A stretch of DNA of 64,000 bases from Hyaloraphidium curvatum SAG 235-1. Taxonomy: Eukaryota; Fungi; Monoblepharomycota. Positions within the stretch are counted from its first letter, which is position 1, and each line of letters opens with the position of its first letter. The notes under the pieces were generated by a model. That model had not been told where the DNA came from, did no database searches, and saw only the letters and a list, made by a program, of their open reading frames with translations. Made by a program: the position numbers and the translations under genes. The stretch lies in NCBI GenBank assembly GCA_025558095.1, contig JAIVFI010000032.1:1-64000 (forward strand), written 5' to 3'. This document shows, piece by piece, positions 23,562 to 46,224 of the stretch.

Positions 23562-25100
23562 TCACGCCGCCGGCACCGGACACACCGTCTCCATCGTGAA
23601 CCCCACCCCCGCGGCCCTCAAGATCGTCCACAGCGCCGCCAGCGCCGTCGCCATTGTCGCCAGCACCGTCCTCACGGTCCCGAACCCGACCGCGGACCCC
23701 CACATGCGGGTCTTGGCGGCGTCGATCTCGAGGAAGGACGAGAGCAGCGCCTCGTGCGCGCGGAGGCCGGCCATGGCGGCGGATTGGGCGGGGGAAGGGG
23801 AGGCGCGGAGGGAGGAGACGGCGAGGAGGCGCAGATCCCGCCGGGCGGAGGAATAGAGGCGGGCCAGGTCGTTGACCTGGTCGTTGCTCGTGGCGATGTT
23901 GACGAGGTCCGTGAGGACAAAGTGCACGAGGAAGAGGAAGTTGAAAATGGCCGCGAAGGGGATGCAATAGCCCCCGAGGATGTTGGAGACGGCCATGGTG
24001 CCGGGCATGAGGAACGCCATCGTGGCGAACGCCGGGGCGATGCCGACGAAGAGGTCGTACCGCCGCGCCCAGCTGCCCGCGATGGCCAGGTGGAGCTGCT
24101 GGTACGGCTCGTCGCCCAGCAGCTGCGCGGGCTCGTCAAAGTCCGAAGAAGTGAGCGCGGTACGGTACCGTGCTACGAGGTTGGCCAGGGCCGACCGCAT
24201 CGCGCGGCGCACGACGCGCCGCGAGAGGTCCAGGGAGGCGAGGTTGCCCGGGTAGCGGAGAAGGTTGTTGACACCGTACCACGCGATCGACGAGGCGACC
24301 GAGAGAGAGAAGAGGAGGGGACCCCACCACGAGGCGAAGAAGGGGCCGCGAAAGGTGATGACCGAGGTCCAGGCGACGAAGAGGTCGATGACGAGGGTGC
24401 CGGAGATCGTGCGGACGGAAAGCTCCAGCAGGTGGAGGCGGCCCGCGAGGACTGGGATGCCGCCAGAGCACCCGGGCCGCGGGCAGGGGCACAGGGTGTC
24501 CGAGGGGTCGTGCTCGAGCAGGCCCGCGGTGACTGCGGCCGGGTCGGGCGCGCCGTCCTCGGCGACCGCGGGCGTCCGCACGAGCTGCAGCCACCTCGCG
24601 ATCCCGGCCCAGATGTGGCTGCTCGCGTCCTGTTTGCCACCCCCGTCACCCAGGCCCCGCGGCCTCCGCACGGCGGGGTAGAATGTCGGGCCCAAGAAAG
24701 TCGCGAAGACCATCCCGAAGGCAAGGACGAGGCCGACCGTGCCCAGGGCCAGTTGCCGCTCGCCAAACCGGCCGTCGTTGAAGACGTACGCGCCCGCGGC
24801 GAAGCACGGCGCGAGGAAGAGGCCCATCGCGCCGCGGGGCACGGCCAATTTGGCGAGAGGGGCAAAGGCAAACTGCATCCGCGTGAGGAGCAGCGTCGGT
24901 CCCGTCCCTTTCAGCTCGTGGAGCAGCGCCACCCGCGTTAGCGGCCTCTCTGCGCGAAGTTCCGCCGCGGGGTCGGCCGAAGCGGCCTCGCCGAGGTCGT
25001 CCGCCGTCGAGAGCGGGGCGGGCACAATGGCGATCCATTCCGCGGCGCTGAAGGCGATCCGCGGGGGCAGGACGCCCGGCGACGCGTGCGTTCCGTCCAT
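23562..25100 (-). CDS. 7-TM protein, GR/OR-like 7TM ion-channel family (member 1)
   Basis: Intronless 512 aa; FSAAEW, ARWLQL, HDPSDTLCPCPRPGC, GYCIP, TRMWGSAVGFGTVRTVLATMAT; seven hydrophobic segments; paralog of 37376, 42728 and 44658. Confidence 0.7.
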   Translation of the reverse strand: MDGTHASPGVLPPRIAFSAAEWIAIVPAPLSTADDLGEAASADPAAELRAERPLTRVALLHELKGTGPTLLLTRMQFAFAPLAKLAVPRGAMGLFLAPCFAAGAYVFNDGRFGERQLALGTVGLVLAFGMVFATFLGPTFYPAVRRPRGLGDGGGKQDASSHIWAGIARWLQLVRTPAVAEDGAPDPAAVTAGLLEHDPSDTLCPCPRPGCSGGIPVLAGRLHLLELSVRTISGTLVIDLFVAWTSVITFRGPFFASWWGPLLFSLSVASSIAWYGVNNLLRYPGNLASLDLSRRVVRRAMRSALANLVARYRTALTSSDFDEPAQLLGDEPYQQLHLAIAGSWARRYDLFVGIAPAFATMAFLMPGTMAVSNILGGYCIPFAAIFNFLFLVHFVLTDLVNIATSNDQVNDLARLYSSARRDLRLLAVSSLRASPSPAQSAAMAGLRAHEALLSSFLEIDAAKTRMWGSAVGFGTVRTVLATMATALAALWTILRAAGVGFTMETVCPVPAA

Positions 25101-25368
25101 CCTCGGCACAGGCAGCACTTCCGCTTCCTCCTCGCCGGGCAAGCGGGCAGCTTTGGGAGACAAACAAAGGTGGAAATGGCGTCGGGAGGCGGCCACGCCG
25201 CGCCGCCCGAACCTCACGCGACCAGCCGGGACTACGTCAGAAAACGTGGAAGCCAGATGAACACCGCTAAATCATGTTCAAGTTGTTCGATAAATCATCA
25301 ATCCGGACCGAGAGGGCGGGACTTCCATGTGTCCCTCAGAGGCCCCGCGTCCCATCATCGTCCCGCGG

Positions 25369-26208
25369 CTAGGCATCATCCGGCTCCCGATCCACCCCTA
25401 TCTTCCACGCGTACTCCTCAAACATCTCCTCCGGGGTCATCCCCAACCACGGCGGGTACTGCATGAGCACCTGCATGCCCAGCTCCGCGATCGTGCCGGC
25501 CTCGTTGGCATGCGGGAACGGCACGTCCGGGACCGGTTTGCCAAGGAAGCGGCACAGGGGCTCCCAACCTTCCTGGGGTCGGAAGACGAGCAGCTGCGAG
25601 GGAGGGACGGCGGACTTGACACGCTGGATGTGGTTGAGGTGGGCCTGGATGGCTCGGGCCTGGCGGGATCGGTGCGGGGTCAGTGCCGAAAACGGGGCCG
25701 GGCGGTGCCGAAATCCCACCTTGTTCATCTTCCCGCCCTTGTCGAGCTTGAACAGCCTGCCCACGCTGTTCCCGCCGTGGTCGAACGCCGTGATGGGGTG
25801 GTCCGGCACCGCCTTCCACGCGTCCCGCTGCAGCCGCCACGTGTTTATCGGCGCGATCCCGTTCGCGTAGGATTTCCACCACGAGTCCATGTCGTCGCGC
25901 ACGGTCAGGATGACCTTGGCGTGGGGCAGCTGCGCCCACGCGTCCTCGAACGCGAAGCCCATGTCCACGAGGGCATCGTACCCCTCGAACGCGCCGAAAT
26001 CGATGTGCTTCCCCGCCGCGGCGGCCGTGAGCAGCTCCTGGTTGTGCGGGTACGTCTGGCCGAATTCGCCCAGCCCGGGGACGACGGTGCCCGGCGGGAA
26101 GCACGCGGTGTAGCTGTGGTGCGATCTGAAGCCCAGGATCTCGAGGGCTACGTGGAGGGAGAGCGTGCCGGTGCGGTGAAATCCCGCTCCGAGGATCGTG
26201 AGGGGCAT
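25369..26208 (-). CDS. P-loop sulfotransferase-like protein (Sulfotransfer_4 type)
   Basis: ILGAGFHRTGTLSLHVALEILG, AKVILTVRD..SWWKS, LLVF...EGWEPLCRFLGKPVPDVPFPHAN; one in-frame intron at about 25660-25719. Confidence 0.88.
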   Translation of the reverse strand: MPLTILGAGFHRTGTLSLHVALEILGFRSHHSYTACFPPGTVVPGLGEFGQTYPHNQELLTAAAAGKHIDFGAFEGYDALVDMGFAFEDAWAQLPHAKVILTVRDDMDSWWKSYANGIAPINTWRLQRDAWKAVPDHPITAFDHGGNSVGRLFKLDKGGKMNKVGFRHRPAPFSALTPHRSRQARAIQAHLNHIQRVKSAVPPSQLLVFRPQEGWEPLCRFLGKPVPDVPFPHANEAGTIAELGMQVLMQYPPWLGMTPEEMFEEYAWKIGVDREPDDA

Positions 26209-26536
26209 TCTGGCGTTGCACGGGCCAAGGGGAACGGCGTTGGGGACCTGTGTCCCCCACGAAGCGCGGAACATTCTCCGAACCCCTCGGCGGAAGCTCC
26301 AGATTCCCCCCCGAAGCTTCTAAAGCGCGTTCTAGGTTATCAAGATACTATTCTGTCGATGGATAATTGTGGAGGAATCCGCGGGCAGGACCCCCCCCGG
26401 TGGATGGGGGACACTCCCTTTCTCCATACACGGCAATACCCATTCACGCGTGTAGGACTTGACCTTCGAAACTGCGCCTTCTGTGCTCGGCTGGGCCCCC
26501 GCCTTCCAGGCGCGACCTGTTTCCGCACCTGCAACC

Positions 26537-27687
26537 ATGCCGCCCTACTCCGAGCTCCAGACTTTCAAGCTGGGCGACTTTACTGTCGAGGACGGGTCCG
26601 CGACCTTGAAGGACGCTTTTCTGGGCTTCAAGACCATCGGCAACGTTGCTACTGCTTCCAAAGGTGGGACCCGCCGTTCAGACGCATCCTGGAGCATCCT
26701 GACGCGTCGCGTGGCCGCCAGTCATCGTCGTTCCCACGGCCTACTCGGGCACCACCGACGCCACCGCGTGGATCGCCGTCCCCCTCTCCGAGCAGCCCGA
26801 CACCGCCATCCTCTGCATCGCCATGTTCGGCTCCGGCGAATCCTCGTCCCCCAGCAACACCCCCTCGCCGCACGACGGCCCGCGCTTCCCCCGCGTCACA
26901 TTGCGCGACAACGTGCGGGCGCAGAAGGCGCTCCTGGACTCGCTGCGCCCTGTCGCGGTCGTGGACGTGGTCGACTGGTCGATGGGCGCGGGGCAGTGCT
27001 GGCACTGGGCCGCCCTGTACCCCGACGCCGTCCGCTCGATCGTGCCGCTGTGCGGGTCGGCCAAGACGTCGCCGCACAACTGGACCTTCCTCGAGGGCGT
27101 CAGGCTGAGCCTGCTCGCGGATCCCAAGTTCGAGGGCGGGGACTACGCCAAGGCCGGCGTGTACCCCGAGGACGGGATGAAGGCGTTCGGCACCGTGTAC
27201 GCGAGCTACGTCGTCAGCCAGGCGTGGTACCGCAAGCAGCGCTGGACCGAGATCGGGATCGCGAGCCTGGGGTCGTTCATCAACGATGCGATCGTGCCCC
27301 TGTTCAGGAGCAGGGACGCCAACGACTTGCTGCTGCAGCTGCATTCGTGGCAGACGAGCGACGTCTCGGCGGGGGGTTCGGTGGAGGAGGCGCTGAAGAA
27401 GATCAAGGCAAGGTGTCTGATCATGCCTTGCGACACGGACATGTACTTCCCGCCCGAGGACTGCTTCATCGTGGGTTGCCATCCGCCTCCGCAGCTTTGG
27501 ATCCTGACCGCCCTCGCCCCCGCAGGAGGAAGCCTACATCGGCGACAAGTCGCGAGCGCGGTGCGTCCCCATCGTCAGCGAGTGGGGCCACATGGCCGCC
27601 AGCGGGTTCTCGCCCGCCGACACGGCGTGGATTTTGGAGAAGGTGAAGGCGTTCCTGTTCGAGGGCGCTGCTCTCGCGAACCTGTAG
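26537..27687 (+). CDS. Homoserine O-acetyltransferase-like alpha/beta hydrolase, copy 2
   Basis: Close paralog of 22231-23383 with the same two intron positions; nucleophile elbow reads DWSMG. Confidence 0.85.
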
Positions 27688-28089
27688 CAGGGTGTGTGTC
27701 TTTGGCAGGGGGTGGATCTTCGACGGCACGGATGGGCGGTGTGTGTACCTTCTTCGCACAACGTGAGCTTTGGTCGGATGCGTAGGGAGGGTGGTGAGCA
27801 CGTGCAGTCGCCGCTCGTCCGCGTACGCTGGAACAGCGCACCCTAAGGCGAACGAGGCCGCGCCATTAAAGCACGCAGTGGCCGGGGGAGGATCCGAACG
27901 CTGTCGGGTGGCGGCAGATGCAGCCGGGGAGGGGGTGGTGAGCCCGGGCTGGGCCCATCAATGAATCGTAGTTCAAGAATTGTCGTTTCCCACCAATTGC
28001 ATTGAATTCCAACTCTTCGCCCGATCGCGGCCGACGGAGAAAGGGGCCCTCGGGGGATCGGCGCCGCAGCTGGACCCCGACCCGCAACA

Positions 28090-29158
28090 ATGCCTCCCCT
28101 TTCGAGCCGGCCCGTGCGGCTCCTCCTCCTCGCGGCCCTATGCGCCGCGCTGCTCCTCCTCCTCTCCGCCCCGCCCGCGGCGGCTGACGCCCCCGCGGCG
28201 TCGATGGAGCCCGACGTATTCGCCAACCTCGAGCACGCGGACTCGCAGGCCCCGGGCGACGCCGGCGCCTTTGCCGCGCAGGAAAAAGCGGCGCCGACGC
28301 AGCCGGGAAGGCCGAGGAAGAGGTCGCTCGCGGCGTTTTTGCTATCTCCTTTCCGGTCGCTGCTGAACGCCGCGGAGAGGGCGCTCTTCGGGCTCGCGGA
28401 CGACGTCTACGACGAGATAGTGGAGTTCGTCACGTTCCCCTTTGTGTGGATATACCAGCACACCATCGGCTTCGCGACGAGGGAGATCAAGGAGGCCGTC
28501 GACGCCCTGGTCGACTGTGGGACTCCGTCCTTGCACCGTGCGCCCGTCTCCTCCGCTAACCCCCGTGCAACCGGATCCCAGTCATCCTCTACCCCTTCCG
28601 CGCCATCTCCTCCGCCATCCGCGCGGCCTTCCGCGCCCTGCACGCGTTCCTCACCTGGCCCTTCCGCAAGCTGTGGGAGCTCCTCACGGCCCCGTTCAGG
28701 GCCGTCGCCGCCTTCTTCGCGCGGATCTGGGCGACCATCCGGAACGTCCTCTCGGCGCCGTTCAAGCTCGTGGGTTCGGCCTTCGCTCCCGCCGCCGTCG
28801 CGGACCGGCTGACCGCCCGCCGCCGCAGCTCTACGCGGTCTTCGTCGCACCCTTCCTCGCACTCTTCCGCCTGATCGCCGCCCCTTTCGTTCTCGGCAAG
28901 GATTTCCTCGAGGACCTCGTGGAGGGCATCGGTCACGTGCTCATGCCGATCTGGTTCGCCGGTCTGTGCCCCTCCGCCGCGTCGATTCCCTTCCGAATAG
29001 GAAGCTGACCACCTCGTTTGACAGCCGTCGCCGTCGGTCTCGGGTACATCTACTTCCGGGTGCCGTACCCGCTGAACTGGCTCTCGATCGGGGGAGTGTT
29101 TGCCGCCGCGGGGGCGCTGCTGTGGAGCGCGGCCGAGTTCGAGCCTGGGCAGCACTGA
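28090..29158 (+). CDS. Signal-peptide protein with amphipathic PF-containing 11-mer repeats
   Basis: Signal LLLLAALCAALLLLL; spliced product contains TWPFRKLWELL-TAPFRAVAAFF, SAPFKL, VAPFLALFRLI-AAPFVLG; three short introns; hydrophobic C-terminus. Confidence 0.6.
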
Positions 29159-29361
29159 GCGTCCCGACAGGGATCGGGGGGGTGTTTGTGCGGATGTAAA
29201 TGGGAATGCAGGTCGCGTGGAGCTGGATCGTCGGCGTCTTTTGCGATCCGGATGCAGGTGGACGTGGAGCGGGCGTAGTCTGTCGCCACGCGGTAACAAG
29301 GCAATCCTACGCTGCCCCCGGCCCACGCCAACATCCGCATCCGCACGCACGGCGCCGGGGC

Positions 29362-31101
29362 TCACGACCTGAACCTCCAGATCTCCTCCGCGTCCTCCCA
29401 CGCCAGGAACCAAGGGCTCGTGTACGCCGGGTTCTCGAACACCGTCGCCTTGCCCGGCGGGTTGCACCGCAGCGCGTCCTCGTTCCCGGCCTTCTGGCAC
29501 ACGTCCCAGCCCCGGCACATCTTGGTGTCCACGGAGCACGCGAGGGCCTCGGATGTGCGGTGGGTCACGCGCGAGTGCTCGTTGGCGTTGTTGTGCGCGC
29601 GCCTTTGCCGGGCGGGGATCAGCGTTGATCGGGCGGCGCGGAGAACGGGGGGGCTCACCAGAACCACTTCGCGATCCCCAGCCTCGTGCCCGCATCGTCC
29701 GGCCCCGTCCCGCGGGAGGGCGGCCCGTACGCGTCCACGAGCTCGCCAAAGTTCCAGCGGCAGAAGATGCAGCTGTGCGTCTGCTTGACGAGGAAGGCGA
29801 GGCCGTCGACGGCGCGGAGCTGCGCAGGGTTGGGAATCTCGGGGGCGTTGTGGGCGAGGGTGTGGAAGATGGTCCCTGGGGGGCTGGTCAGACCGGCGGG
29901 GACGTGGCGGCGACGTACAAGGAACGCCCACATAGGTAGATGTAGTTCATGGCGGTGCTGATGAAGGGGGCCTGCAGCGCCCCGAGGGGGAAAGACGTGC
30001 ACTCGGTGCGCGCACACGGGGTGCCAGCAGGGGCTGGGCACGTGCCGTCGGCGTCGAAGCAGATCGGGAAGGGCCACAGCTGCTTGAGGAGATCGTCTGT
30101 CCGCACGGACCGCCGATCAGCCGGGCAAGAAGCAACGCAACGAGGGTGCGAACCCACTCCCGGCGCGCCAGAGCCCCGCCTGGCTCCCCCCGTAGAAGCT
30201 CACGATCCCCGCGCCGTTCGGCACCGGCACCGCCTCCATCGCGCTCTGGTTGTTGGTCACCTCGTTCATCCCGTTCTGCGAAACCAGGTAGCGCCCCGAG
30301 AACTCGAGCTCGGTCCGGTTGGGCGGCCTCCCCGCGGCCGAGGGGCACCACATGCCCGAGCCGGGGAGCGTGGCGGTGTTGGTGGGATCGAACGCCGGGG
30401 ACTCCCAGCCTTTGAACGAGTTGGTGTAGCACATGTTCCGGGGGCGGCGCTGCACGCAGGTCGGGGGGAGCACGTGGACGGTGTCGCCCGTGCAGAGGAG
30501 CGAGGCGGGGTCGCAGAAGGTGCCGCGCTTGAAGTAGTGGCCGTCCTCCTGGATGGGGTGGAAGGCGGGGCCGGAGAAGGCGGGGGTGCAGGACTGGCCC
30601 TCTTGCGCGTACGCTTGGCAACGACCGCGGTTCATGAAGTTGTCCGAGAAGGGGCGCCAGTTGTCCCGCACGTCGACGAGGCAGAACATCCCGTCGGGAC
30701 AGACGTAAGGCTTGTTGGGCTGCAGGAACGGATCCTCCGAGTTGGCCTTGTACGTGGGCGCCCCCGGCGCGGAGCCCAGCGCGCCGAAGCAGTCCGTGGC
30801 TCTTTCATCGCCCCGCAAGGGGTTCATCGCCCCGCAAGGGGAGGGTCAGATGGGATGGCGAGGTGTTCGACAGCGCGCCCCACAGGGAGTACTTGTACCC
30901 CGCCGCCGCCGGACTCTGCCGCCTGCCGAGCCTCCTGCGCGATGCGGCGTCCAGCAGCGCCTCGTCGACGAGCGGCGGGCGCGCCGAGTCCTCGCGCGCC
31001 GAGTCGGGCTCGCCGAGGATCACATCGTGGCCGTTCAGCAGCGCGGCGTGCGCGGCGTGGGCCGCGAGGAGGGCGCCGGCCAGCGCGGTCGGGAGGCGCA
31101 T
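29362..31101 (-). CDS. Secreted Cys-rich protein with C-terminal Erv1/ALR FAD sulfhydryl oxidase domain
   Basis: Signal MRLPTALAGALLAAHAAHA; after splicing reads LWTIFHTLA...HSCIFCRWNF...KWFWRAHNNAN (W-x3-H, CxxC, W-x3/4-HN-x2-N); about four introns. Confidence 0.75.
30804..30841. repeat. 19-bp perfect tandem duplication
   Basis: ttcatcgccccgcaagggg occurs twice in tandem. Confidence 0.9.
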
Positions 31102-31352
31102 GTCGGCAAACGTCCCTTGGGGGAGCACGGGGGCGGAGATGGGATGGGGGATGCCGAGGCGGAAAATCGGTTCAACTGTCCTTGTTCCTTCCTCCAAGCC
31201 GCAGCAAGTGGGGACGGAGGGTCTTCCTCCAATGCCGAAGGAAGACAGCGGCATTAGAAACAGCGGATCCATCCATCCCGTTTGATCGACCGCGTCATCC
31301 GGCGCGGGCGGGATGAGCGGCCGCCTCGCCTCATCTTGACGTCAACATCGCG

Positions 31353-32264: not shown

Positions 32265-32327
32265 GTCGGTGCGGGAGCGGTATCGTGGTCACCGTCTAGT
32301 GTCCCTGATGACGACGGTCAACCACCA

Positions 32328-32365
32328 TTGGCCCATCACCGCCCACCCCTCGGCGCGCACGAGGC
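32328..32365 (-). repeat. 38-bp inverted copy of 36891-36928
   Basis: ttggcccatcaccgcccacccctcggcgcgcacgaggc is the reverse complement of gcctcgtgcgcgccgaggggtgggcagtgatgggccaa, with one mismatch. Confidence 0.8.
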
Positions 32366-32482
32366 GTTCGAAAAGCCAAGTGACGGACTGTAGGCGTCTT
32401 CAGATCAGTGGACAGCTCACCCGACGACATCTACAGCAGCTTCAGAGACACAGATCAAAACGAAGCTCAAGCCCACGTCCCT

Positions 32483-35400
32483 TCACTCGCTGTCCTCGTC
32501 CTCGTCCCCCAGCACGAACCCCAGATCCTCCTCGTCCATGTCGTCCTCGTCCAGCATCTCCAGCCCCTCGTCCTCCGCCAGCTGCCCCAGCCCCTCCGGC
32601 ACCAGCCGCGGCGTGTACTCCATCGTCAGCCCCGTGTCCGCGCGCGCCACCGCCGGCGCGCGCGCGGCCATCTCCATCTCCGGGGTGGATGTGACCTTCT
32701 TGGCCGCGGAAAAGGTGGTGTCCTTGCGCAGCGACGCCGCGGTGCCGTCCCGCCTGAGCCCGGCCTCCTTCTCGCGCTCCTTCTCCTTCTCCCGCTCGGC
32801 GCGCGCGCGCTTGCGCTCCTCCCGCTCCGCCTTCTTGTCCTCCGTGGGCGGCTGCAGGATCTGGAAGGGCAGGGGGACGTCGAGCACGGCGCGGTAGAGG
32901 CCGCAGTTGTTGAGGTGCTCGTTCTCCATCCGGAAGCTGGCCAACGCGGGGAAAGCTCGGTCAGCCGACGGTCGGGGGACGCCGACGCGCACCTACAAGT
33001 TCCACTGGAACCGGCGGTACACCTCGAGCAGCGCAAACAGCAGCGCCAGGATCCGGCCGTCGATGAGGATCCCCCAGTAGGACGGGGAGATGAGCAGCAC
33101 CCAGTTGACCCTCAGCGCCGCGTTGAGCACGATGGCGATGTAGTACACCGCGATCGGGGCGTAGCGGAGCTCCTTGCGCAGGAGAAAGTGCTTGTCCCTG
33201 AACTCGAGGATGCGGAACAGGCCCCAGTCTGCGGCCACGGGGAGTCAGCGTGTCCGCTCCGAGCAAAAGAGAGACAGCCCACCGTAGTAAACGTCCCACG
33301 CGTACGAATACGTCGCGCTCAGCGCCGCCGTCGCGATCCACAAACCCCGGGCCGCGTCCCCGCCCGATATCTTGGACCACGTCGAGAACCAGATGACGAG
33401 CAGGGACAGCACGTACTTGCACCCGTTCGCCCCGTGCGGCCACGCGTTCCCCGTCTCGCGCCACCGCAGGAGGCACTGCCCCAGCCGCCACAGCGCCGGA
33501 AACGAAGTCGGCAAGGCGACGAAGTACGTGGCACCCATGGGGCAGGCGGCGCCGAGGTCCTCCCAGTGCGAGATGTAGGCGCACGCAAACGCCTGGATGG
33601 AGGTGAAGGTGTAGGTGACGCTGTTGAGCTCGTCGGTGATGAAGAAATCGCGGAACTCGACCCGCGCGGTGCCGAGGGCGTTGAACGACACGATGCGGGC
33701 CATGGTGCGGATGAACCACCACCGCGCCGAGCGGTGCAGCTGGTCAAAGGGCCAGAGGGCAAAGAGAAGGAGGACGCCGGCGAGGATGGCGGGGTAGAGG
33801 GTGCGCGGGATGAAGGGGAGGAAGTTGAAGCCCACAGAGAGGTACAGGGCGTAGCCGACGAGGACGATGGCCCAGAGGGCGAGCTCCTGCAGCTGGTAGG
33901 GGGTCAGGTAGTCGCGCGGGTTCCACTCGAAGATGAAGGGGTAGTTGATCTGCACCCGGGCGTAGGCCAGGCTGTTGACGCCAAAGAGGTAGAGGAGGAG
34001 CAGGGGGACGAAGAACCCGCCGTAGATCTTTCCTGGTGCGTCAGCACAGACTCCAATAGCCGCGAGCAAGGTGCACTTTACCTGAAGCATGACCCGGATG
34101 TCCTGCGGGAACACCGGCTCGTTGACCGCGATGCTGATGCACGAATACACCGTCGCCACGGCCGGCGGCAGCACCAAGCCCAGCAGCAGCCCGCTCCTGT
34201 ACGTCGGCCCAAAGTCACCCCTCCGCGCCGGCACCGCGGCTAGGGACGCGTGCGGCAGCCGGAGCTGGTGTACCAGCCTGCGGCGCTCCGAGGGCGGGAC
34301 GACGCGTTCTGAGGGGGGGGAGGGGAACGGGGGGGCGGTGCAGAGGTGCACGTAGAGGTCCTCGGTGGCGAGGACGAGCTTGGGGACGAGGGTGCTGGCG
34401 ACGAACGAGGCGGGCACTGGTAGACGGAGGGTGAGACGTCGAGGCGTGCGTCGCGAGAACGAGGGAACCCACGGACGCGCTCCGTGAACCACTTCTTCCC
34501 GAGCCCCTTCTCCACCGTGCCGCCATTCGCCCCTTCGTCGGTCGCCAGGCTCTTGATGCTCGGCGCCTTCCCCCCTCCCGCCGCCGCCCCCTTCTCGGCC
34601 TTCCTCCGCTCCTTCTCCGCCCCCGCCGCGACCCGCAGCACCTCGTCCATCCGCCTCGCCGCGCGCTCGAGCGCCCCCCTGTTGAGCGACTGGAAGTTGC
34701 GCACGAGGCTGAGGAAGCGGTAGTACTCCATCACCGCCTTGGTCAGGTTGTGCCGCGCGTCGGCGAGCGAGCGGACGCTGGCGAGCGGGGCGACGAGGAG
34801 CTCCGCGGGGGAGGCGGGGGAGTACGCGGGGGAGGCGGCGGCGACGGAGCGGAGGGAGGCGGCGGTGGGGAGGCGGCCGGTGGAGATGCCGAGTTCGGTA
34901 GGGGGGCGGTGCGGGCCGTGCGGGGAGGAGGCGGCGGCGGTGGGGCGGTGCCGGAGGAGGTTGGAGGGGGACATTGGGAAGAGCGGGGTGGCGTCGGGGG
35001 GATGTTCGGGGCGGGGAGGTCGGAGGTGCCGGCGAGAGAGGGTTTGGAGGCCGCGGGGCCGAGGACCAAAGGGGTGTTGGGGAGGCCCGGCGGGGGGGTG
35101 TCGGTGCGGGAAGGGGAGAGCACGACGTTGGGGGTACCGGTGATGCCGGCGGGGGAGGGGGTCGCCGACACGGTGCCGTTGAGGGGCGTCCCCGCGGTCC
35201 CGTCTCCGGAAAAGCCGTTGGAAGAGCCCGGCCGCACGGCGGGCGACTTGGAGCCCGAGCCCTTGCCGCCAAAGATGCGCCCCCACTCGGACCTAGACAC
35301 CACCTTTGGCGTCTTGGGCAGGTCCGACGTCTTGTTGGCGCGATTGACGGCCGACGCCGGCACCGAGATGGGCTGGGTCGGCAGCCTGCCCCCTTTCGAG

Positions 35401-35867
35401 GTATCCCAGTCCAGCGTGAAGGCCGCGAAGCCGAACGGGAACTCGTCCGCGCGCCGCCGCGCGCTGGTGTCAAATCTGGCGCCCGCCTTTTCGGTGCGCA
35501 GCCGCTCCTCGAGCTCCTCGATCAGCCGCGCCTGCGAGATGAGCGCGTTCCACCGCTCCACGGCCTCCCTCTCGCGCAGCCGGTAGAAGTCGTCGACCTT
35601 TTCCAGCTGGCGGTCGAGCAGCGCCAGCAGCGGCGCCCACGGCGGTTCCTGTTCCGCACGGTCCGGCGCCGGCAGCTCCTCGGGCACGGCGACCAGCCCG
35701 CCGCCCATCGCGGGCAGGTCCACGCGCGGCGTCGGCACGCGCGGCGGCGCGAGCAGCGCGGCCTCGAGGTCGCGCAGCGCCTTCTTGAGCTTGCCGTACG
35801 AGACGTACTTGGCGCGCCATTCCGAGACGAGCTCCTCCTCGAAGTACAAAGAGAACTTGGTCGGCAT
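32483..35867 (-). CDS. SYG1: SPX-EXS phosphate exporter (SYG1/XPR1/PHO1 family)
   Basis: MPTKFSLYFEEELVSEWRAKYVSYGKLKK, QLEKVDDFY (SPX); INYPFIFE, VEFRDFFITDELNS, YSYAWDV..DWGL, LEVYRRFQWN.FRMENEHLNNCG.YRA (EXS); multi-exon. Confidence 0.93.
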
Positions 35868-36137
35868 CGCGGCAACGTCCTGCCCACCGCGGAACACACG
35901 AACTGCCGGACTACGCGGGACTCGTTCCGCAGCCCCTTAGGAACACTTTAGGCACCGCCTAGCCAGACCCATGGCCGGACCGGCACCAGGTCCGCAGGGG
36001 GAGACGTGGCGGGCCAGGAAAATCCCTTGCCCAAACACCACGTCCGTCTCCGAGCCTCCGGAGTTCGGGGAGCACAGCTTAGTTTCCTCCGTATCTTTCT
36101 CCGGCCCTGCTCTTTGCCAGCTTCAGTCGGCCCGAGC

Positions 36138-36920: not shown

Positions 36921-37375
36921 TGGGCCAAGTCGAAGAATGGGAGTTGCTTGCGGCTAGACATCGAATCCTCAGTTGCGGTTCTCGCCCTCCACCAGAGCGG
37001 GGGAACGCCTCAACCACTTGACCATTCGGAGGATTATATACACGACCATTGTCCAGTCCTTTCCATCAGCGTGGCCGTCTTTTCCGCATGTTGGGCGCTG
37101 ATCGTGCAGCCAATCTCCGGACATTGAAGTAGTGCTACTGGAACAGAGCTGCGCCACAGTGGGCGGCCGTCGCGCAAACTCCGGATCTACCAGTCGTCGC
37201 CTGATCGAGTTGTTTACCGATTGTTTACCTTCCGCAGCATTTCCTCACTCCGCCCTGGAATCTCGCCAGCCCCACGAATCCCACGTCTAGTACAGACCGT
37301 CGCGAGCAGCAGACTTCTGGACCCAGGGGATGACTAGAGGGGTGGTGTGACCAGCGTCGATTTCGAGGGGAGACA

Positions 37376-38968
37376 ATGGAGACCGACGCCCGGGATCCCC
37401 CCGCCGACCGGGTTCCGACCGCGCCTCGGCCGCTCTTTTCTCCTGCAGAATGGCTCTGCCTGTTGCCGGCGGCGCGGGAACCCCAAACGCGCGTGTCGAC
37501 GCTGGCGGCGCTGCTCCCGACCAACCCGGATCCCGCGGCGGCACTGCGGACCGCGAAGCCGCTGACCCCCGCGGAAATGAGGCACGCGATGGAAGTCGAC
37601 GGAGGCGCTCTGCTCCGCGCGGCGCTGACGTGGCAGCTCCGGATGTCCGAGCTCGGACGCGCGACTTTCGCCCTCGTGACCGTCTCGACGATGGCGGCGC
37701 TGGTGCCGCTCACTGCCGCCATGGTGCTCTGCGACACCGGCGGCGAGTACTCCCCGGCCAGCCAGGCAGTGGGACTCGCGGGCGTCTGGGCCCTCTGGGG
37801 CATTGCTTTCGTCCAGATCTGGGCCGGCGTGCACAAGTTCGTCGTCGACCGGTACTATCGGGCTATCAAGTCCGGCGAAGAGGAAGAAAGGGACGCCGAG
37901 GGACAGTTGCCGGCGGCACAGGACCTTTCCCGGCACCCTTTTGCGACCATGGCGAGGTGGCTCCAGTTGGTCGGGTCGGACGGCGCACCGCCGAGTTCCC
38001 CCGGATCGATCCTCCTGGCGGAAAGCCACCGCACGGGAGGAAGCGGGCTCGTATCGCACAGGGAAGGCAACGCCGACTGCCCCTGCTTCGCCTGCGCGCG
38101 CCCCCTCGTTCCTCTTGCGGGCCAGCTCCGCGCCCTCGAGTTCGCCGCCCGCGCGGCATTTGTCTTCGCCTCCGTCGTCTTTTCCACCCCTGCGCTGCTC
38201 AGCTATCCTGCAACCGTGTGGACCACCTGGTGGACGGCGCTCGCGGCGGCGGTGTTCCTGGCGGCGCTGGGATTCAGCGGGCTGCTGTTTGCGGGGACCA
38301 GGGTGCCGACCAACCTGGCCCTGCTGGACCTGGAGTCCCGCCTGCACCGCCGCGCGCTGCTCCTGGCCCTGCGCGAGTTCCTGGACCGGTACGGCCGGGC
38401 GGTCTCTGAGGGCAGCGGGGCGGAGGGGCCGGCAGCACCCGCCGACGAAACCTACGTCGTCCTGTTCCGATCCCTCGTCTCGGTCTGGAAAGACCGCTTC
38501 CCCGCCCTCCTCACCGGCACGGCCGTCGTCACGCGCCTCCTCGTGATCCCCGCCGCCGCCGCCGTCGCCTGCATCGCCGCCGGCTCGTGCGTGCCCCTCT
38601 GGACCGTCGTCGTCCTGGCCTCGTGCTTCGTGCTTCTCCTCGTGGACCTGGTCAACCACGCCGCGGCAAACGCGCAGATCGGCGGCTGCGTTGCGCTGCT
38701 GGGCCTCGCCCGCGCCGAAGCCCGGGAGCTCCTCGCCTCCTCCGCCTCGCGCCCGGGGCCCGCGAGGGAAGCCCTCGCGCAGCACGCGGAACTGATGGCG
38801 GCGCTGGCGGGGTCGGCGGGCAGCGGCGCGCGGCTGTTTGGGGCCGTGGTGAGCTACGGCGTGGTGAGGGCCGCGGCGGCGACGGTGTTCACCGTGGCGA
38901 TCGGGCTGTGGGGGGTGCTGAGGGGGACGGGGGTGAGGGTGGAGATTGCGGTGGCGTGCGCGGCGTGA
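37376..38968 (+). CDS. 7-TM protein, GR/OR-like 7TM ion-channel family (member 2)
   Basis: Intronless 530 aa; FSPAEW, MARWLQL, HREGNADCPCFAC, GSCVP, GARLFGAVVSYGVVRAAAATVFT. Confidence 0.75.
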   Translation: METDARDPPADRVPTAPRPLFSPAEWLCLLPAAREPQTRVSTLAALLPTNPDPAAALRTAKPLTPAEMRHAMEVDGGALLRAALTWQLRMSELGRATFALVTVSTMAALVPLTAAMVLCDTGGEYSPASQAVGLAGVWALWGIAFVQIWAGVHKFVVDRYYRAIKSGEEEERDAEGQLPAAQDLSRHPFATMARWLQLVGSDGAPPSSPGSILLAESHRTGGSGLVSHREGNADCPCFACARPLVPLAGQLRALEFAARAAFVFASVVFSTPALLSYPATVWTTWWTALAAAVFLAALGFSGLLFAGTRVPTNLALLDLESRLHRRALLLALREFLDRYGRAVSEGSGAEGPAAPADETYVVLFRSLVSVWKDRFPALLTGTAVVTRLLVIPAAAAVACIAAGSCVPLWTVVVLASCFVLLLVDLVNHAAANAQIGGCVALLGLARAEARELLASSASRPGPAREALAQHAELMAALAGSAGSGARLFGAVVSYGVVRAAAATVFTVAIGLWGVLRGTGVRVEIAVACAA

Positions 38969-39282
38969 TGGACCGGGACGGGCTGCCTTCACTCGGCCGG
39001 GGTGCCTCCGGGCGTGAGTGACATCAACCTATGCTGCTGGACAGTTGGACGGATTCGTGGAGGTGCGAAGGGTGCGCCGCGACCGAGCGCTGTACGCAGA
39101 GCACGTTGCTATAGAGCTCGTCCTCGCTGGATAGGCAGCCGGCTGGAGGACCGATGCCGATGACCGGGGATCGCTGGGTTGCCAACGGCGCCTTTACCAA
39201 GCACCACCGTACACATCCACGGAATGACCAATCCATGCCGATCCCCAGACGAAGCCCAGATCCAATGCCACCCCCCTGCGCC

Positions 39283-40646
39283 TCAGAACGCCTCGGGCCC
39301 GGGCGTCGCCCGCGCCTTGAGCGCGCGCCTGTATCCCTGGTCGGCGAACGCGCGCGCGACCAGCTCGCGCCGCCCCAGGCGGACCGTGGTGATTTCCTGC
39401 GCGCGGGGCGGTCAGCTCGCATGCACGCACGCGCATCGGGATCGGCTCACCGTCGTGGAAACCTCGAAGAAGTCGCCGCCGCCAGGGGGCGCGGGCGGCT
39501 GCCCGCTGGCGTCGGCCTTGAACACCAGGGCGCCGGACTGCCCCTCGATCTGCACGGCGTACGTCTCGCCCGGGTTGAGGTTGGTCGGGAGGCGGATGGT
39601 GCAGCGGCCGTCGGCCAGGGTGATGCACTGCCCGAGGATGACGGTCTGACGGGCGCCGAGGCGGCGGGTGGGGCCGTTGAGGACGACGAGGGCGCCGGAG
39701 CGGGGGGTGTCCGGGGGGTTCTGGTAGATGCCGTCGCCGGCAACGTCTGGAGGAGGCGGGGGAGGGGGTGAGCGGGGCCGGCGGGGGAGCGATGGGGAGG
39801 CGCACCGTTGAAGGCAAACACGGGGATGACCACCGCCGCCGGCTGCGTGACCGTCCTTGTGACCGTCTTGGTGGTCGTCTTGACCGTCGTCGTCTTTATC
39901 CTCGTCGTGGTCTTTGTGCGGGTGCGGTACGACGTGACCTTGGTCAGCCTGCAGCACCGCCTCGTGTTGCCCGAGCCGCTGGCGGCGGGCACGACGCCCT
40001 GCGGGCAGTAGCCGCAGACGCCCGTGCGCTGCTCCTGCCGGGCATACAGGTTGTGCTCGTCGCCGTCGGGGGCCGTGAAGTCTTCCGTCTCGTCGGGGAA
40101 CGACCTCTCGTTGAATGGCTCCTCCACCACCTCCTCGGCCGGGCTCTCGGCGGCGGCGGGCTCGGGTTCGGGCAGATCCCGCTCCAGCACTTGCGCGGAG
40201 GGTGCCTGCTCAACCTCCGCAAAGGGCGCCTCCCCATCGCGGGCTTCGAGCCGGCGCCGGTTGAGAGACGTGGTCGTGACGGTTCGGGTGACTGTTCTCG
40301 TGCGCTTGAGTGTCTTGACTGCCGTGCGCGTCCTGTACTTTGTGGAGATGACCGTCCTGCTCTTTGGGCAGCAGCAGCCGCCGCCCCAGCCGTTGTTGTT
40401 GCTGCCATCGGTGCCCGCGGGTGAGTCCTTATCGCGGGGGACCGGCGTGGGCTGCCCACCAGGTCGGCGCCTTGACCCAGACGAGCGAGGGCGTGTTGGG
40501 GCTGACGCCCTGCGCGGCCGCGGGCAGCGCGGCGGCCAGCGCGGCGGCGGCGCCGAGGAGCGCGAGCAGAGTCGCCGGGAGGACCTGTCGGCGGCGGGCG
40601 GTGTCAGCGGGGCGCGGCGGCCGCCGGCGCGCGGGCGCACCTTCAT
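39283..40646 (-). CDS. Secreted protein with two Cys/Thr/Lys/Arg-rich repeats and an SdrD-B/CnaB-like C-terminal domain
   Basis: MK|VLPATLLALLGAAAALAAALPAAAQ signal after a micro-exon; CCCPKSRTVISTKYRTRT... and CCRLTKVTSYRTRTKT...; VFAFN|DVAGDGIYQ...GALVVL...TLADGRCTI; four introns. Confidence 0.65.
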
Positions 40647-41260
40647 CGCGGCAGATCGCGTCCGGCGCGAGTGCGATGCGGCGGCGGGACGCTGTGGGCC
40701 CCCGGGCACAGCGCTTTTCATGAGTCCCTCTGCGGGCGGCTGACGAGGAACGTCAGGCAGGGGGACTGCCGCACCTCAGCCCCATGACCTAACCCACCGC
40801 CCCGTGGCCGACGAGGTCCGCGACAGGCCCGGCGCTCGTCGGTGATCACCCTGCGAAATGTTCCGTCCATTTCCGGCGCGATTCGCTTCCCCCGGGCCGC
40901 CGAAGCGAGCACGGTGCTTTGGCGGGTCCTCCCCCAGCCGCCATGCAACTTTCCAAGGGGCGGCTTCCGCCGGTGCACGGGCAGCATCGGCACCACGGGT
41001 TCTGTGATCTGGTCCGAGCCATCACCTTGCATTCGTTCTCAGTGTTTTCCGAAGCAAAGCAGTGGGTTGGCGCGGGAAGGGCGCACACAGCGCTTGCGAT
41101 GCGGAGGTGGAAGAACCCGTTTCCCGCCCGCGTCTGATTGCGAACCAATCCCTGTTGGGTTTGATCAGGAATGACACAGCCAATCAGGTGATCTATGAAG
41201 CACGGACGCCATCGTCAGGCGCAAGATCTAGTGCCGCGAACACCATCCCCCTTCCCTCCT

Positions 41261-42214
41261 TCACGCCGCCGCCGCCACCACCGGCACCGGCACCGCGACG
41301 ACCGTCGGCCCTTTGCCCTTGCTCAGCAGCGCCAGCTCCTTGTCCAACACCGCGTCCTGTCTGGCCAGCCACGCCGCGACCCCCGGCCACCCCATCGCCC
41401 CGCGCACCTCCGCGGCCCCCCTCTCGACAGCCGGATCCACGCGCAGGGATCCGGGATCGATCGTCCGCCCCCTATCATCGTCTTCCAGGGCCGCCGTGAT
41501 GGCACCCCTGCCGCCGAACGCCTCCCTCGCGAACCGCTCGGCCTCCCTCCTCCACCCGTCCACGCTCCTCACGGCCGACTTGAGCGCACCCAGCAGCACC
41601 CCCATGTCCGTCGTCCGGACGGTGTTCAGGTACGCCCTCCTGATCAGCTTCGCCTGCCTCTTCTGCTCCCCCGGGTCCGCCGACGCGAGCCACCCGTTGG
41701 CCAGGCACCTGTCCACCGCCCGCGAGAGCAGCAGCACCTCCGCCAGATCCCTCCACACCCCCGTGAACGCCGTCAGCAACGCCACCATCTTCCTGATGGG
41801 GAACAGCAGCAGGGCGAGGGGCAACCCCGCCACCGCCCCGCAGCACCTCCTCGCCACCCCCCCGGCCACCGACCCGCACAGCACCGCCACGATCGCCCCG
41901 GAAGGCTGCCTCCCGTGCGCCCTCCACGTCCGCGCGACGGCAGTCCTGAGCGCGCGGTGCTTGATCGCCCGGTCGGCCATGGGGACGGGGACGAACCGCG
42001 AGGCGGCGGCGGCGAGGGCGCACAGCGCCCATTCGCGCTGCAGGCGGGAGCTGACGGTCATTCCCGGGGCGGGGGAGGGCTCGGTGGAGGCGGAGGTGGA
42101 GGAGGGAGGGCGCGCGGGGTCGTCGGAGGGCGGGGCGAGCGACGGCGCGGGGGCCTCGGAGCCGCGGGTCGAGACGGCGGTGGAGGCCAGGGGGCAGCTT
42201 TCGGTGCTCGTCAT
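41261..42214 (-). CDS. Hypothetical protein, bacterial-type (DUF697-like PVP motif)
   Basis: Intronless ORF with coding-like codon bias; ALAAAASRFVPVPMAD, LLLFPIRK; low-complexity N-terminal extension. Confidence 0.6.
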   Translation of the reverse strand: MTSTESCPLASTAVSTRGSEAPAPSLAPPSDDPARPPSSTSASTEPSPAPGMTVSSRLQREWALCALAAAASRFVPVPMADRAIKHRALRTAVARTWRAHGRQPSGAIVAVLCGSVAGGVARRCCGAVAGLPLALLLFPIRKMVALLTAFTGVWRDLAEVLLLSRAVDRCLANGWLASADPGEQKRQAKLIRRAYLNTVRTTDMGVLLGALKSAVRSVDGWRREAERFAREAFGGRGAITAALEDDDRGRTIDPGSLRVDPAVERGAAEVRGAMGWPGVAAWLARQDAVLDKELALLSKGKGPTVVAVPVPVVAAAA

Positions 42215-42727
42215 TTTGTTGGTCTTGGGCACGGAATCGCTCGGCTTGAGCCCGTTCGGGTGTTTGGGTGCACGAAGGAGATGGTGACGTGGCCCTACGG
42301 TCTGTCCGCTGCGTCGATATGTTGACGCTGCCCGAAACCGCGCAGGCAGCCTTTCTGAGGGCTGGACAACTCCAAGATTCGCAAGGGAAGAAGCAACGTG
42401 GCCGAAATGGAGTGCGGCTTCCGCCCGCGGATGCCGCAGACAGGGGCTTTCGAGCGGCTCAACGTGCCGACGCTTTTGGGGCTAGCGACCGAAGAAGATC
42501 AGAATCGCAGGAGGCACCAATTTGACGATCGGACAGCGGAAGACAACAGTCGAGAGGGGTACCAATCGGGATAGGGCTTGCGTCGCGGCACGGGATAAGT
42601 CATTGACCAAACGCCCCACGGCCAGCAATACGTCCCATCGCACATCATCATTGATTTCGTTGATTCTGCCAAAAACCGACTGAATGGGAGCGGTCAGTCA
42701 CGCGCGACATGTATCAAAACCAGCCCA

Positions 42728-44335
42728 TCACGCCGCGCACGCCACCGCGATCTCCACCCGCACCCCCGTTCCCCTCAACACCCCCCACAGGCCGATTGCC
42801 ACGGTGAGCACCGTCGCTGCGGCAGCCCTCACCACGCCGTAGCTCACCACGGCGCCGAAGAACCGCGCGCCGCTGCCCGCCGAGCCCGCCAGCGCTGCCA
42901 TGAGCTCCGCGTGCTGCGCGAGGGCTTCCCTTGCCGGCCCCGGGCGGGAGGCGGAGGCGGCGAGGAGCTCCCGGGCCTCGGCGCGGGCGAGGCCGAGCAG
43001 CGAGACGCAGCCCCCGATCTGCGCGTTGGCTGCAGCGTGGTTGACCAGATCCATGACGAGGAGCACGAAGCAGGCGGCCAGGACAAGGATGATCCAAAGG
43101 GGCACGCATGAGCCCGCGGCGACGCACGCGACGGCGGCGGCAACGGGGATCACCACGTTGCGCGAGAGGAAGGCGGTCCCCGTGAGGAGCGCCGGGAAGC
43201 GGTCCTTCCAGACCGAGACGAGGGAGCGGAACAGCGCGACGTAAATCTCGTCGGCCGGTGCCGCTAGTTCAGAGATGATGGCTGCTTCGGACGCCTCACT
43301 CGTCCCGCCACCCGCCGAGACCACGCGAGCGTACCGGTCCAGAAACTCCCGAAGGGCCAGGAGCAGCGCACGACGGTGTAGCCGCGACTCGAGGTCAAGC
43401 AGCGCAAGGTTGGTCGGCACCCTGGCGGCCGGGCTCACCAACAAGCCCATGGCCAGTGGCAGCAGGAACATCACGGCGGCAATGGCCGTCCAGGGTGTGG
43501 TCCAAAGTGCCACGGGGTAGCTGAGAAGGGCCGGCGCAGAGACGACAATGTAGGAGAGGGCAAAGGCGTAGCGCACGGTGAACTCCATAACGCGCAGTAT
43601 CCCGGCCAGGGGAACCAGAGATCGGGCGCAGGCGAAACAGGAGCAGTCCCGGTCACCATCTACGTGGGAGACGAGCCCGACACCTTTTGTGCTCTCCACC
43701 CGAACGGTCGATCCCGCGTCGCTGGGGGCTTTCTCCGCGCCGAAAAGCTGGAGCCACCTCGCCATCGTCGCGAAAGGGTGTCGCGACAGGTCCTGTGTTG
43801 CTGGCAGCTGCTTTGGACCCCTTTCGTCGTCGTTCTTGCGGATCTTCCCTCGGTAGTAGCCCTGCACGATGAGTTGGTTCAGGCCCGCCCAGACTTGGGC
43901 AAAGACCGCGCCCCAGAATGCCCAGATAGCCGCAAGGCCTACGCCCAGACTCGCTGTAGGATATCGTCCGCTGGTGTTGAAGAGTACCATCGCCGCCGTG
44001 AGCGCGGCAAGAGCCGCCGTCGAGAGGACTGTCATCGGCAAGAGGGTAACGCGTCCGACCTCCGAAATCCGAAGCTGCCAGGTCAACGCGGCCCTGAGCA
44101 GTGCACCGCCGTCCACGTCCAGCGCATTCCTCATTTCCGCCGGGGTCAGCGGCCTCGCGGTCCGCAGCGCCGCCGCGGGATCCGAGTTCGTTGGAACCAG
44201 CGCCGCGAAGGTCGACACGCGCGTTTGAGGTTCCCGCGCCGCCGGCAGTAAGCAGAGCCATTCCGCGGGAGAAAAGAGCGGCTGCGACGCGGTTGGGACG
44301 GGCTCGGCGGAGGAAACCCCGCCGTCGTCGTCCAT
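42728..44335 (-). CDS. 7-TM protein, GR/OR-like 7TM ion-channel family (member 3; recent paralog of member 2)
   Basis: Intronless 535 aa; C-terminal about 100 aa nearly identical to 37376-38968; HVDGDRDCSCFAC. Confidence 0.75.
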   Translation of the reverse strand: MDDDGGVSSAEPVPTASQPLFSPAEWLCLLPAAREPQTRVSTFAALVPTNSDPAAALRTARPLTPAEMRNALDVDGGALLRAALTWQLRISEVGRVTLLPMTVLSTAALAALTAAMVLFNTSGRYPTASLGVGLAAIWAFWGAVFAQVWAGLNQLIVQGYYRGKIRKNDDERGPKQLPATQDLSRHPFATMARWLQLFGAEKAPSDAGSTVRVESTKGVGLVSHVDGDRDCSCFACARSLVPLAGILRVMEFTVRYAFALSYIVVSAPALLSYPVALWTTPWTAIAAVMFLLPLAMGLLVSPAARVPTNLALLDLESRLHRRALLLALREFLDRYARVVSAGGGTSEASEAAIISELAAPADEIYVALFRSLVSVWKDRFPALLTGTAFLSRNVVIPVAAAVACVAAGSCVPLWIILVLAACFVLLVMDLVNHAAANAQIGGCVSLLGLARAEARELLAASASRPGPAREALAQHAELMAALAGSAGSGARFFGAVVSYGVVRAAAATVLTVAIGLWGVLRGTGVRVEIAVACAA

Positions 44336-44657
44336 TGTCTCCTAGCCTGCTGAAATTGACAACGCGGCGGCAAATACTGCCCTGTCCTCCCCCGGGCTAC
44401 GGACCGCTCGCTGTGCCAGCGCTGGACGTGAAGCTCGTGAGGCAACGAGATTCCAGGGAAGCAGGCAGTTTCCGTGGAAGCTGGGAAAGGGCAAGTCGAA
44501 TCCCGGAAACAGGCAGACGACTCGTGTCGCTTCGTGGAGCACGGAGCTCTGTTTCAACGGGATCTGGCCCAATTGTCCTTGGATACCGAGCACAGTTCTG
44601 CTGCGATACCTCGGGATTCACCGCGATTTCCGCCCACGGAGTGGCCCGCTGTCGAGA

Positions 44658-46224
44658 ATGACTCCGGAGACTTTTACCGACATCGAGGCCCCCAGCAACG
44701 GACTCCCGGCATCCTACGATGGTGCAGAATGGCTGGCCCTGTTCCCTCACCCCGACGGCGCGCCCCCTCCGTCGCCCCTCGCCACCGCGGCGTCGCCCGC
44801 CGTCCCTCGCGGCCCGTTTCCGGCGCTATGGGCCGCAGAACCCCTGCCGATGGCCGAGCTGGTGCGGATCGTGCGGAACATCTCACCGTTTCATGGCGCC
44901 ATCGTCAGGTTTCAGGCCACGACAGCGGGGTGGGCCGCGCGAGTGCTGTTCCGGAACGGGCTCGTCGCTGTTAGCGTGCTTTCCGCCGCTCTGCTTGGCA
45001 TCTGGTTCTATCTCGAGACGGGCCTGTCGCAGCGGATTGTGGGCACCGTGACCGTCCTTCTGGAGCACCTGGCGCCTATGGTCGCTGTGGCCATCAACTC
45101 GGAATCAATCTCCGCGGGCCTCGGCGCCGCCGGAAACGCCGAAGACCAGAACTGGAACCCGCTCGCCGTCCTATATCGGTACCGCATGTTACAGTTGCGC
45201 GCCACAGATGGGAAACCGTGCCCCCTTCTCGAGCATCGCGACATGGATTCGCACTGTCCGTGCCCTGGGCCGAACTGCGCCGGTCCCGTACTCTTTCCGG
45301 CGTCAGCCTTGGGCTGGCACCACCTGATAGCAGCGACCTTGTTTGGATTCAGCAAAGCAATGGTGTCGTGGACGGCTCTAGTCACGTTTGGCGCCGCCTT
45401 CTGGCCGACGCCGTACGGCGCCATTCTTGGCATCGGTTGCGGTACGTTTCCCGCACTCGCCTTGCGTCCCACCTTAACAGCCGTCTCCAGTGCTTTTCAC
45501 CGCCAACGTCGCCATCTTCAGCTACGTCCCCTGGCTCTACAGCCAGAATCCCAAGCTCGGGTGCCTGCAGCAGCGCCTCCGGTACCGAGCTTCGATGCTA
45601 GCCCTGTCATCACTCCTTTCTGCCGCGCAGCATGATCTCCTCGGCGAGAGAGCGGATGGAAAACGGGAACGACTCACCCGCGGCGACGGCCAGCTCGAGC
45701 TGGTCCTGCACGACTCGCTCGCCGCTTCCTGGAAGTACGATTTCAACAGCCTCACAAGCTGGGCTTCAGTGTTTGGCCTTAATGTGGTTGTAACGGCCAT
45801 CGCCATCGTGGCCAACATGGCCGCCGGATCGTGCGTGCCCGCGTACCCGATCGCCACCCTCGTCTACGTTGTGTTCGTTTTTGCGCACAACCTCGTCCTC
45901 CTGGCGTCGTACAACTCGGACGTCGACGTTATCTCGGAGCTCTATGGCTCCACCGCCTCCCTTCTCTCGCGGCTCCTTGCCTCCGCCGCCGCCCAGCCCA
46001 ACACGGACCCCGCCTCCCTGCGGCGGTGGCAGGCGCGCCTCGAGGCCCTACGCCCGCTCGCGGACGGCGAACAGCTGCGGGCGCGGTTCCTCGGCACCGA
46101 GATCGGGTACGGCGCGCTCCGGGCGGTGGCGGCGACAGCGTTCACGGCAGCAGTGGGCATGTTTGGGATCTTCAGGCCGCTGGGGATCAGGGTGACGATG
46201 GACGTCGCGTGTGTGGTTGGCTGA
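44658..46224 (+). CDS. 7-TM protein, GR/OR-like 7TM ion-channel family (member 4)
   Basis: Exons 44658-45441 and 45491-46224 (49-nt GT-AG intron); YDGAEW, HRDMDSHCPCPGPNC, GSCVP, RARFLGTEIGYGALRAVAATAFT. Confidence 0.72.

Follow-up and report, generated by a model that had tools for sequence, protein, structure and literature searches.

The closest known systems to the proteins described here are the insect OR/Orco/GR receptors (AaegOR10, AgamOR28, MhOR5, ApisOR5-Orco, BmGr9, Gr43a and Gr64a). According to the text in which the 7TMIC name was proposed, function is known almost only for such insect members, and its authors state that channel function is not known for most members (bioRxiv 2023.08.30.555482). 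Non-animal 7TMICs have been described as small families, with one member in Spizellomyces and six in Thecamonas and Vitrella; the fungal members known so far are GRL1 of Spizellomyces punctatus and S. palustris, one gene per genome that keeps one of four TM7 motif positions, and plant genomes carry 4-12 members of DUF3537 (PMC7746228).

Another probable example of this fold is found in the aquatic fungus Hyaloraphidium curvatum SAG 235-1, which lacks a flagellum (PMC6899921) and belongs to the Monoblepharomycota, so that the early-diverging fungus suspected as host in a preliminary description of this DNA is indeed one. Its genome encodes an old, very large, lineage-restricted family of 7TMIC-fold membrane proteins, four members of which lie in the 64,000-nucleotide stretch analysed here (the window). 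As with the chytrid GRLs, 7TMIC features are seen here in an early-diverging fungus, but the family has about 400-475 loci where Spizellomyces has one gene per genome, and H. curvatum is non-motile whereas Spizellomyces has motile zoospores; no sequence relationship to chytrid GRLs was found, the comparison being made with their published description. A literature search found no paper describing the family, and the running text of the 2023 7TMIC screen makes no mention of Hyaloraphidium. The surprising features of the family are its size and its host, and its proteins were previously unannotated.

Family members in the window

Four intact paralogs had been proposed in the window, and all four genes are real, although only three of them are single open reading frames: paralog A (23562..25100, minus strand, 512 aa), modelled as a 7TMIC-fold membrane protein; paralog B (37376..38968, plus strand, 530 aa); and paralog C (42728..44335, minus strand, 535 aa), a recent, inverted duplicate of B. 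Paralog D (44658-46224, plus strand) runs through two reading frames, with exon 1 (44658..45441) covering the N-terminus to about TM3-TM4 and exon 2 (45491..46224; family profile E 1.2e-57) covering TM4 to the C-terminus. Between them lies a 49-nt GT..AG intron (45442..45490), whose donor and acceptor are visible in the sequence, and the public gene model P0116 (505 aa) fits both exons with the same splice junction. This canonical intron rules out D as a frameshifted pseudogene. A relic suspected at 464-770 was recovered by the family profile at 533..757 on the plus strand (E 5.8e-13; E 1.3e-10 with a smaller profile), where it comprises the end of TM5, TM6 and the start of the TM6-7 linker; with the family profile, no other part of this gene was detected in the 64-kb window, nor any further family match beyond A-D and the relic.

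C and D are arranged head-to-head with 322 bp between them. B and C share 72% amino acid and 76% DNA identity, with similarity confined to the coding region, and A and D are each about 27-29% identical to the other window copies and sit on separate branches of the family tree, which was built with FastTree. The window genes fall into three lineages, which rules out a local tandem array.

Family size and genome distribution

In the H. curvatum genome (31.9 Mb, 55 contigs), the family comprises about 400-475 loci, or roughly one per 70-80 kb, a total that includes some broken copies; a large family had been anticipated, and its size underestimated. A genome search with B gave at least 84 matches (81 of 683 candidates scored), and a 24-sequence profile, run against 1.84 billion representatives clustered at 50% identity, retrieved 462 proteins with E<=0.001, 29 of 30 looked up being entered as 'hypothetical protein' of Hyaloraphidium curvatum. 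DNA patterns provided a copy count independent of the profile search: H-x3-D-x2-C-P-C, which fits 67% of retrieved family proteins and is carried by 18 of the 23 B-search loci on contigs C1-C13, occurs 312 times in the genome (control, 2), and H-x3-D-x2-C-x-C, which fits 83%, occurs 435 times (control, 40). The loci are dispersed, with small clusters, and the majority lack introns; compared pairwise, 96 full-length members share 27% identity on average. Word-based homolog searches returned just 2, 3 and 9 of the roughly 460 proteins in the data, and their blanks therefore say little.

Topology and conserved cysteine and histidine residues

Family-mean hydropathy has exactly seven peaks, in agreement with the seven hydrophobic segments first recognised in the window copies. 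Loops on the C-terminal side are short (median 8 aa for TM1-2, 8 for TM3-4 and 7 for TM5-6) and those on the N-terminal side long (about 86 aa for TM2-3, 72 for TM4-5 and 74 for TM6-7); the earlier loop pattern was correct for the three short loops and for TM4-5 and TM6-7, but missed the long TM2-3 loop. Lysine and arginine average 12.6 on the N side versus 2.4 on the C side, and the imbalance points the same way in all 96 members, so that by the positive-inside rule the N-terminus is predicted to be inside, as previously supposed, and the C-terminus extracellular. Under this predicted topology, the extracellular loops are shorter than the intracellular ones (7-8 versus 72-86 aa).

The TM2-3 loop, which is predicted to be cytosolic, holds the most invariant motif of the family, H-x3-D-x2-C-x-C-x(2,4)-C, located at 24468..24512 on the minus strand in A (H197, C204, C206 and C211) and at 38057..38095 on the plus strand in B (H228, C235, C237 and C240). 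Its histidine and three cysteines are invariant in 96 of 96 members and form a candidate zinc site. On the predicted outer side, C379 of the TM5-6 loop (conserved in 100%) and C507 of the C-tail (98%), spanning 23580..23966 on the minus strand in A, are candidates for a family-specific disulfide, and the AlphaFold model of A has short strands at 379-381 and 500-502.

Fold and relationship to 7TMICs

The AlphaFold model of A (pLDDT 91.5, pTM 0.91) finds its best structural matches exclusively among insect OR/GR/Orco proteins, full-length in two models, at rmsd 5-6 Å and 6-10% identity. Foldseek TM scores against solved OR/GR structures are at most 0.34/0.41, with poor alignments, and are not significant alone, the benchmark for the superfamily being a score above 0.5 to a known member; an Atlas cluster without a name, rich in echinoderm sequences, reaches 0.53/0.65. 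By language-model features, DUF3537 is the nearest named 7TMIC cluster (0.88-0.90), and a TMEM39 cluster lies at 0.89-0.93. In model A, helices 259-281/287-317, 332-347/349-377 and 382-432 fall inside the OR-aligned range, and the long TM4, TM5 and TM6 that they form appear to reach into the cytosol as in the 7TMIC anchor. TM6 runs on as a 50-residue helix, followed by helix 437-462, a short hairpin and helix 473-496. Judged from secondary structure, the same split TM7, with a cytosolic TM7a and a membrane TM7b, is present in model B, and this order of helix, hairpin and last membrane helix is that of the 7TMIC definition (bioRxiv 2023.08.30.555482). Structural alignments begin at model residues 52-70 and receptor chain residues 1-16, and helices 56-62 and 68-78 of model A occupy the place of the 7TMIC N-terminal re-entrant loop (TM0), by alignment start only. 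A GPCR was rejected, the N-terminus being predicted inside rather than outside and rhodopsin-type helix packing being absent.

The sequence-link searches, all one-step profile searches, gave nothing credible in Pfam for five window ORFs and 24 paralogs, no match of the family profile to PDB sequences at E<=10, and no match for PF12056, PF12129 (PHTF) or PF08395 in the H. curvatum genome, where controls were equally silent. By its modelled structure, the family has the features of a 7TMIC without a sequence match to GR/GRL, DUF3537 or PHTF; the fold and the distinct subfamily that had been suggested are supported, and homology to 7TMICs is very likely. Compared with insect OR/GRs, to which no profile match was found, the H. 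curvatum proteins are about 100 aa longer (an 85-aa N-terminus and the 86-aa TM2-3 loop with its His/Cys motif), end in a 16-aa C-tail that includes a conserved Cys, and are mostly encoded without introns. A long first intracellular loop, here about 86 aa, is a Class-B (PHTF-like) trait; the PHTFs, however, are conserved and low-copy, as opposed to about 400-475 loci, and no such His/Cys motif is described in them by the available part of the 7TMIC literature. Plant and algal DUF3537 proteins (PF12056) likewise have the 7TMIC fold without a recognisable TM7 motif (PMC7746228), whereas no PF12056 HMM match is found in the H. curvatum family.

The predicted pore helix

TM7b of A (23619..23669, minus strand; residues 478-494) is the predicted pore helix and has the lowest entropy of the seven (1.7 bits, versus 2.9-3.2 for TM1-6). 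One of its faces carries a stripe of small and hydroxyl residues, with T at 478 (52%), 482 (79%) and 485 (99%), G/A at 489 (98%) and S/T/G at 492 (100%). The family shares with insect OR/GRs the pattern of a conserved pore and a variable pocket, and as far as structure can tell it would work like an OR/GR-type repertoire. A pre-TM7 motif drawn up from the four window copies fits all of them but just 14 of 151 family proteins, and the pattern T-x4-(L/M)(W/F)-x2-(L/F)R fits 82 of the 151; the robust positions, in A numbering, are G468, R477 and T485. The animal GR/GRL motif (T/S)Yhhhhh(Q/K/E)(F/L/M), looked for as TY-x5-QF, is found in 0 of 151. At the positions aligned with TYhhhhhQF, the family keeps T in 99%, while Y gives way to V/L, Q to S/T/G and F to V/I/L, and thus differs from insect OR/GRs in the replacement of Y, Q and F as well as of the second gate.

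While the preliminary description compared TM7 with Orco, the register was tested here through BmGr9 and MhOR5 numbering, that of BmGr9, including T436, T429, F444, Q443 and I440, being taken from PMC11100771. In five structures the alignments end with A 493/494/495 opposite BmGr9 444/445/446, and in two with A 494 opposite MhOR5 469. In this register, T485 falls on BmGr9 T436, the T of TYhhhhhQF, as the earlier comparison had implied for the family threonine; residue 478 coincides with T429 of the second hydroxyl ring, G/A489 with I440, the second gate, S/T/G492 with Q443 and V/I/L493 with the gate F444. The register of TM7b onto BmGr9 S7b is probable, not certain, because no gap is assumed and a shift of 1-3 residues is seen with model B.

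Evolution and members outside this genome

Each of eight paralog pairs has a dN/dS of 0.24-0.45, and the genes are therefore under purifying selection; the pairwise tests on these pairs did not point to positive selection. B and C are 50-61% identical over TM1-TM4, compared with 96% from the TM6-7 linker onwards, and dN is 0.30-0.36 versus 0.018 over the same parts; since dS, too, is reduced at the 3' end (0.35 versus 1.0-1.5), partial gene conversion may contribute. Across 30 loci, no shared flanks were found beyond a few pairs, and terminal branches are long (median 1.0, FastTree).

A family member from metagenomes (P0135/P0152; ENA, JGI, Logan) lies on a contig of 54% GC with no DNA similarity to the closest H. 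curvatum loci, its protein being 54% identical to the best H. curvatum copy, and the FastTree tree places it within one subfamily, with P0012 as its sister (support 98). A second environmental member, P0156, shares 60% identity with P0152 and 53% with the best H. curvatum copy, and has different neighbours, so that the family occurs in at least one further organism. Two metagenome contig scans for the family found nothing. An SNF2-like neighbour of an environmental member has its best H. curvatum match about 2 kb from two family members, a weak synteny. As P0152 falls inside one subfamily, the main radiation probably predates the split between SAG 235-1 and this environmental relative. Together with the mean identity of 27% and the dN/dS values, this nesting indicates that most of the radiation is old, with duplication and loss ongoing; the earlier wording 'rapidly diversifying' was too strong.

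Proposed mechanism and alternative explanations

We somewhat favour the reading that these proteins form tetrameric, ligand-regulated ion channels that have the TM7b pore in common, differ in their pockets and sense dissolved chemicals. In such a channel, the N-terminus would lie inside and four subunits would meet via the long cytosolic TM4-6/TM7a anchor, around a central pore lined by the conserved Thr/Thr/Thr/Gly/Ser face of TM7b with a V/I/L plug at the position of BmGr9 F444. The variable TM1-TM6 bundle would give each paralog a different small-molecule pocket, and binding would open the pore and let ions pass, reporting dissolved chemicals to the non-motile cell. The cytosolic His/Cys3 site, probably for zinc, and the putative outer disulfide would be family-specific additions. 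The tetramer, ion conduction and ligands are proposed by analogy with insect receptors, the polar TM7b stripe of the monomer models lending indirect support to a TM7b-lined tetramer, and gating by outside ligands is about evenly balanced, leaning slightly towards being correct.

The same fold could also serve permeases for solutes or ions, or pores with weak gating, acting in uptake or osmotic and ion balance rather than in sensing. Such a role would suit a walled, non-motile host cell, the strongly conserved hydroxyl/glycine pore stripe, and the replacement of the Q/F switch and second hydrophobic gate by small residues. It seems unlikely, as variation is concentrated in TM1-TM6, on the pocket side, whereas among hundreds of permeases the pore itself should differ, and no structural match to any transporter fold was found. 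Another possibility is a convergent or remotely related 7TM bundle that is no channel but an ER or plasma-membrane scaffold, a zinc-dependent enzyme or a sensor. The missing sequence link to 7TMICs, the rmsd of 5-6 Å, the proximity of the TMEM39 cluster (0.89-0.93) and the fact that the most invariant residues are cytosolic His/Cys rather than pore residues all point that way, as does PHTF, a 7TMIC from the literature whose first inner loop is long and which sits in the ER. This explanation is improbable, however, given the full-length OR/GR match in two models and the agreement of topology, loop pattern, helix-hairpin-TM7b end and one-sided polar TM7b stripe.

Large, dispersed, lineage-restricted repertoires with relics are typical of recognition families generally, and the very large repertoire seen here, with its relics and broken copies, would also fit non-self or danger receptors, in which channels sensing algal, bacterial, viral or parasite molecules cause ion flux and then defence or cell death, a role that needs no motility. 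We regard this as quite improbable, since the pairwise tests lack positive selection (dN/dS 0.24-0.45), extracellular loops of 7-8 aa suit small molecules rather than proteins, and no test supports it. That the copies are shadows of GC-rich ORFs, or mobile-element cargo spread by transposons without host function, might be suggested by the GC content of 64-72%, which produces many spurious ORFs, and by the mostly intronless, dispersed copies. This is largely refuted by dN/dS and divergence, and is very improbable in view of the purifying selection in eight pairs, a GC3 of 0.75-0.93, motifs that stay invariant at 27% identity, the lack of a common flank at 30 loci beyond a few pairs, and the confident fold.

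Significance

With about 400-475 loci, the family outnumbers the combined OR and GR genes of Drosophila and is close to the number in ants. It is possible, though on balance slightly doubtful in all its parts, that an early-diverging fungus without motility arrived independently at several hundred ligand-gated 7TMIC channels, a repertoire of insect size, which form a new subfamily marked by a cytosolic zinc site and lacking the Q/F gate, and with it at an ionotropic chemical sense that parallels smell and taste in insects. The family makes it testable whether non-animal 7TMICs conduct ions and sense chemicals, and its hundreds of mostly intronless paralogs lend themselves directly to expression and ligand screening. 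If these proteins are gated channels, a large chemoreceptor repertoire would have arisen independently from the 7TMIC fold, in a cell without neurons or flagellum.

Arrangement of the paralogs in the window

Paralogs C and D, which belong to different subfamilies, lie head to head and are separated by 322 bp (window 44336-44657), a stretch that could possibly serve as a shared promoter. Paralogs B and C lie in inverted orientation (window 37376-44335), and their synonymous sites have diverged far less at the 3' end (dS 0.35) than in the central part (1.0-1.5), which points to possible gene conversion between them.

Neighbouring genes and flanks

Between B and C there is an ORF (39447-40721, minus strand) with repeated Thr/Lys/Arg-rich, Cys-flanked segments, for which a Pfam search returned no match. 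A gene at 10801-12732 (plus strand) carries an anoctamin dimerisation domain (E 4e-7) and is predicted from sequence to encode a TMEM16-type channel or scramblase. Seven other neighbours are ordinary, unrelated genes, namely an EXS family gene (33245-35473, minus), an acyl-CoA dehydrogenase (46332-47159, minus), an ABC transporter (17044-18399, plus), an alpha/beta hydrolase (22517-23383, plus), a gene with a fungal Zn2Cys6 domain (49043-51271, plus), a GT61 gene (5149-6810, minus), and a gene with NPCBM and glucose/sorbosone dehydrogenase domains (54149-57951, minus); among these window neighbours, no functional cluster around the family genes was found.

Repeats of ~70-120 bp (85-96% identical) are common to the flanks of loci L016, L027 and L030 and are perhaps a small mobile element; they are not general to the family.

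Family members beyond the window

Five public family gene models (P0011, P0020, P0050, P0109, P0114) are 650-790 aa long and extend past the family domain, representing either real fusions or annotation merges.

Two family members are metagenomic, one, P0135/P0152, at L031:4-1216 (ENA ERZ28593542) and L032 (JGI 3300043314), and the other, P0156, in ENA ERZ22067504. The contig of P0135/P0152 also carries an SNF2-like gene, whose best match lies within G000:C45:86885-94290 (L036, L037) of the H. curvatum genome, ~2 kb away from two tandem family members (89728-91346 and 92798-94290, each in two frames); gene order around it differs between the two contigs. Both metagenomic members share at most 53-54% identity with any H. 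curvatum genome copy, the contig of one has 54% GC, and their source is probably an unsequenced Hyaloraphidium relative.
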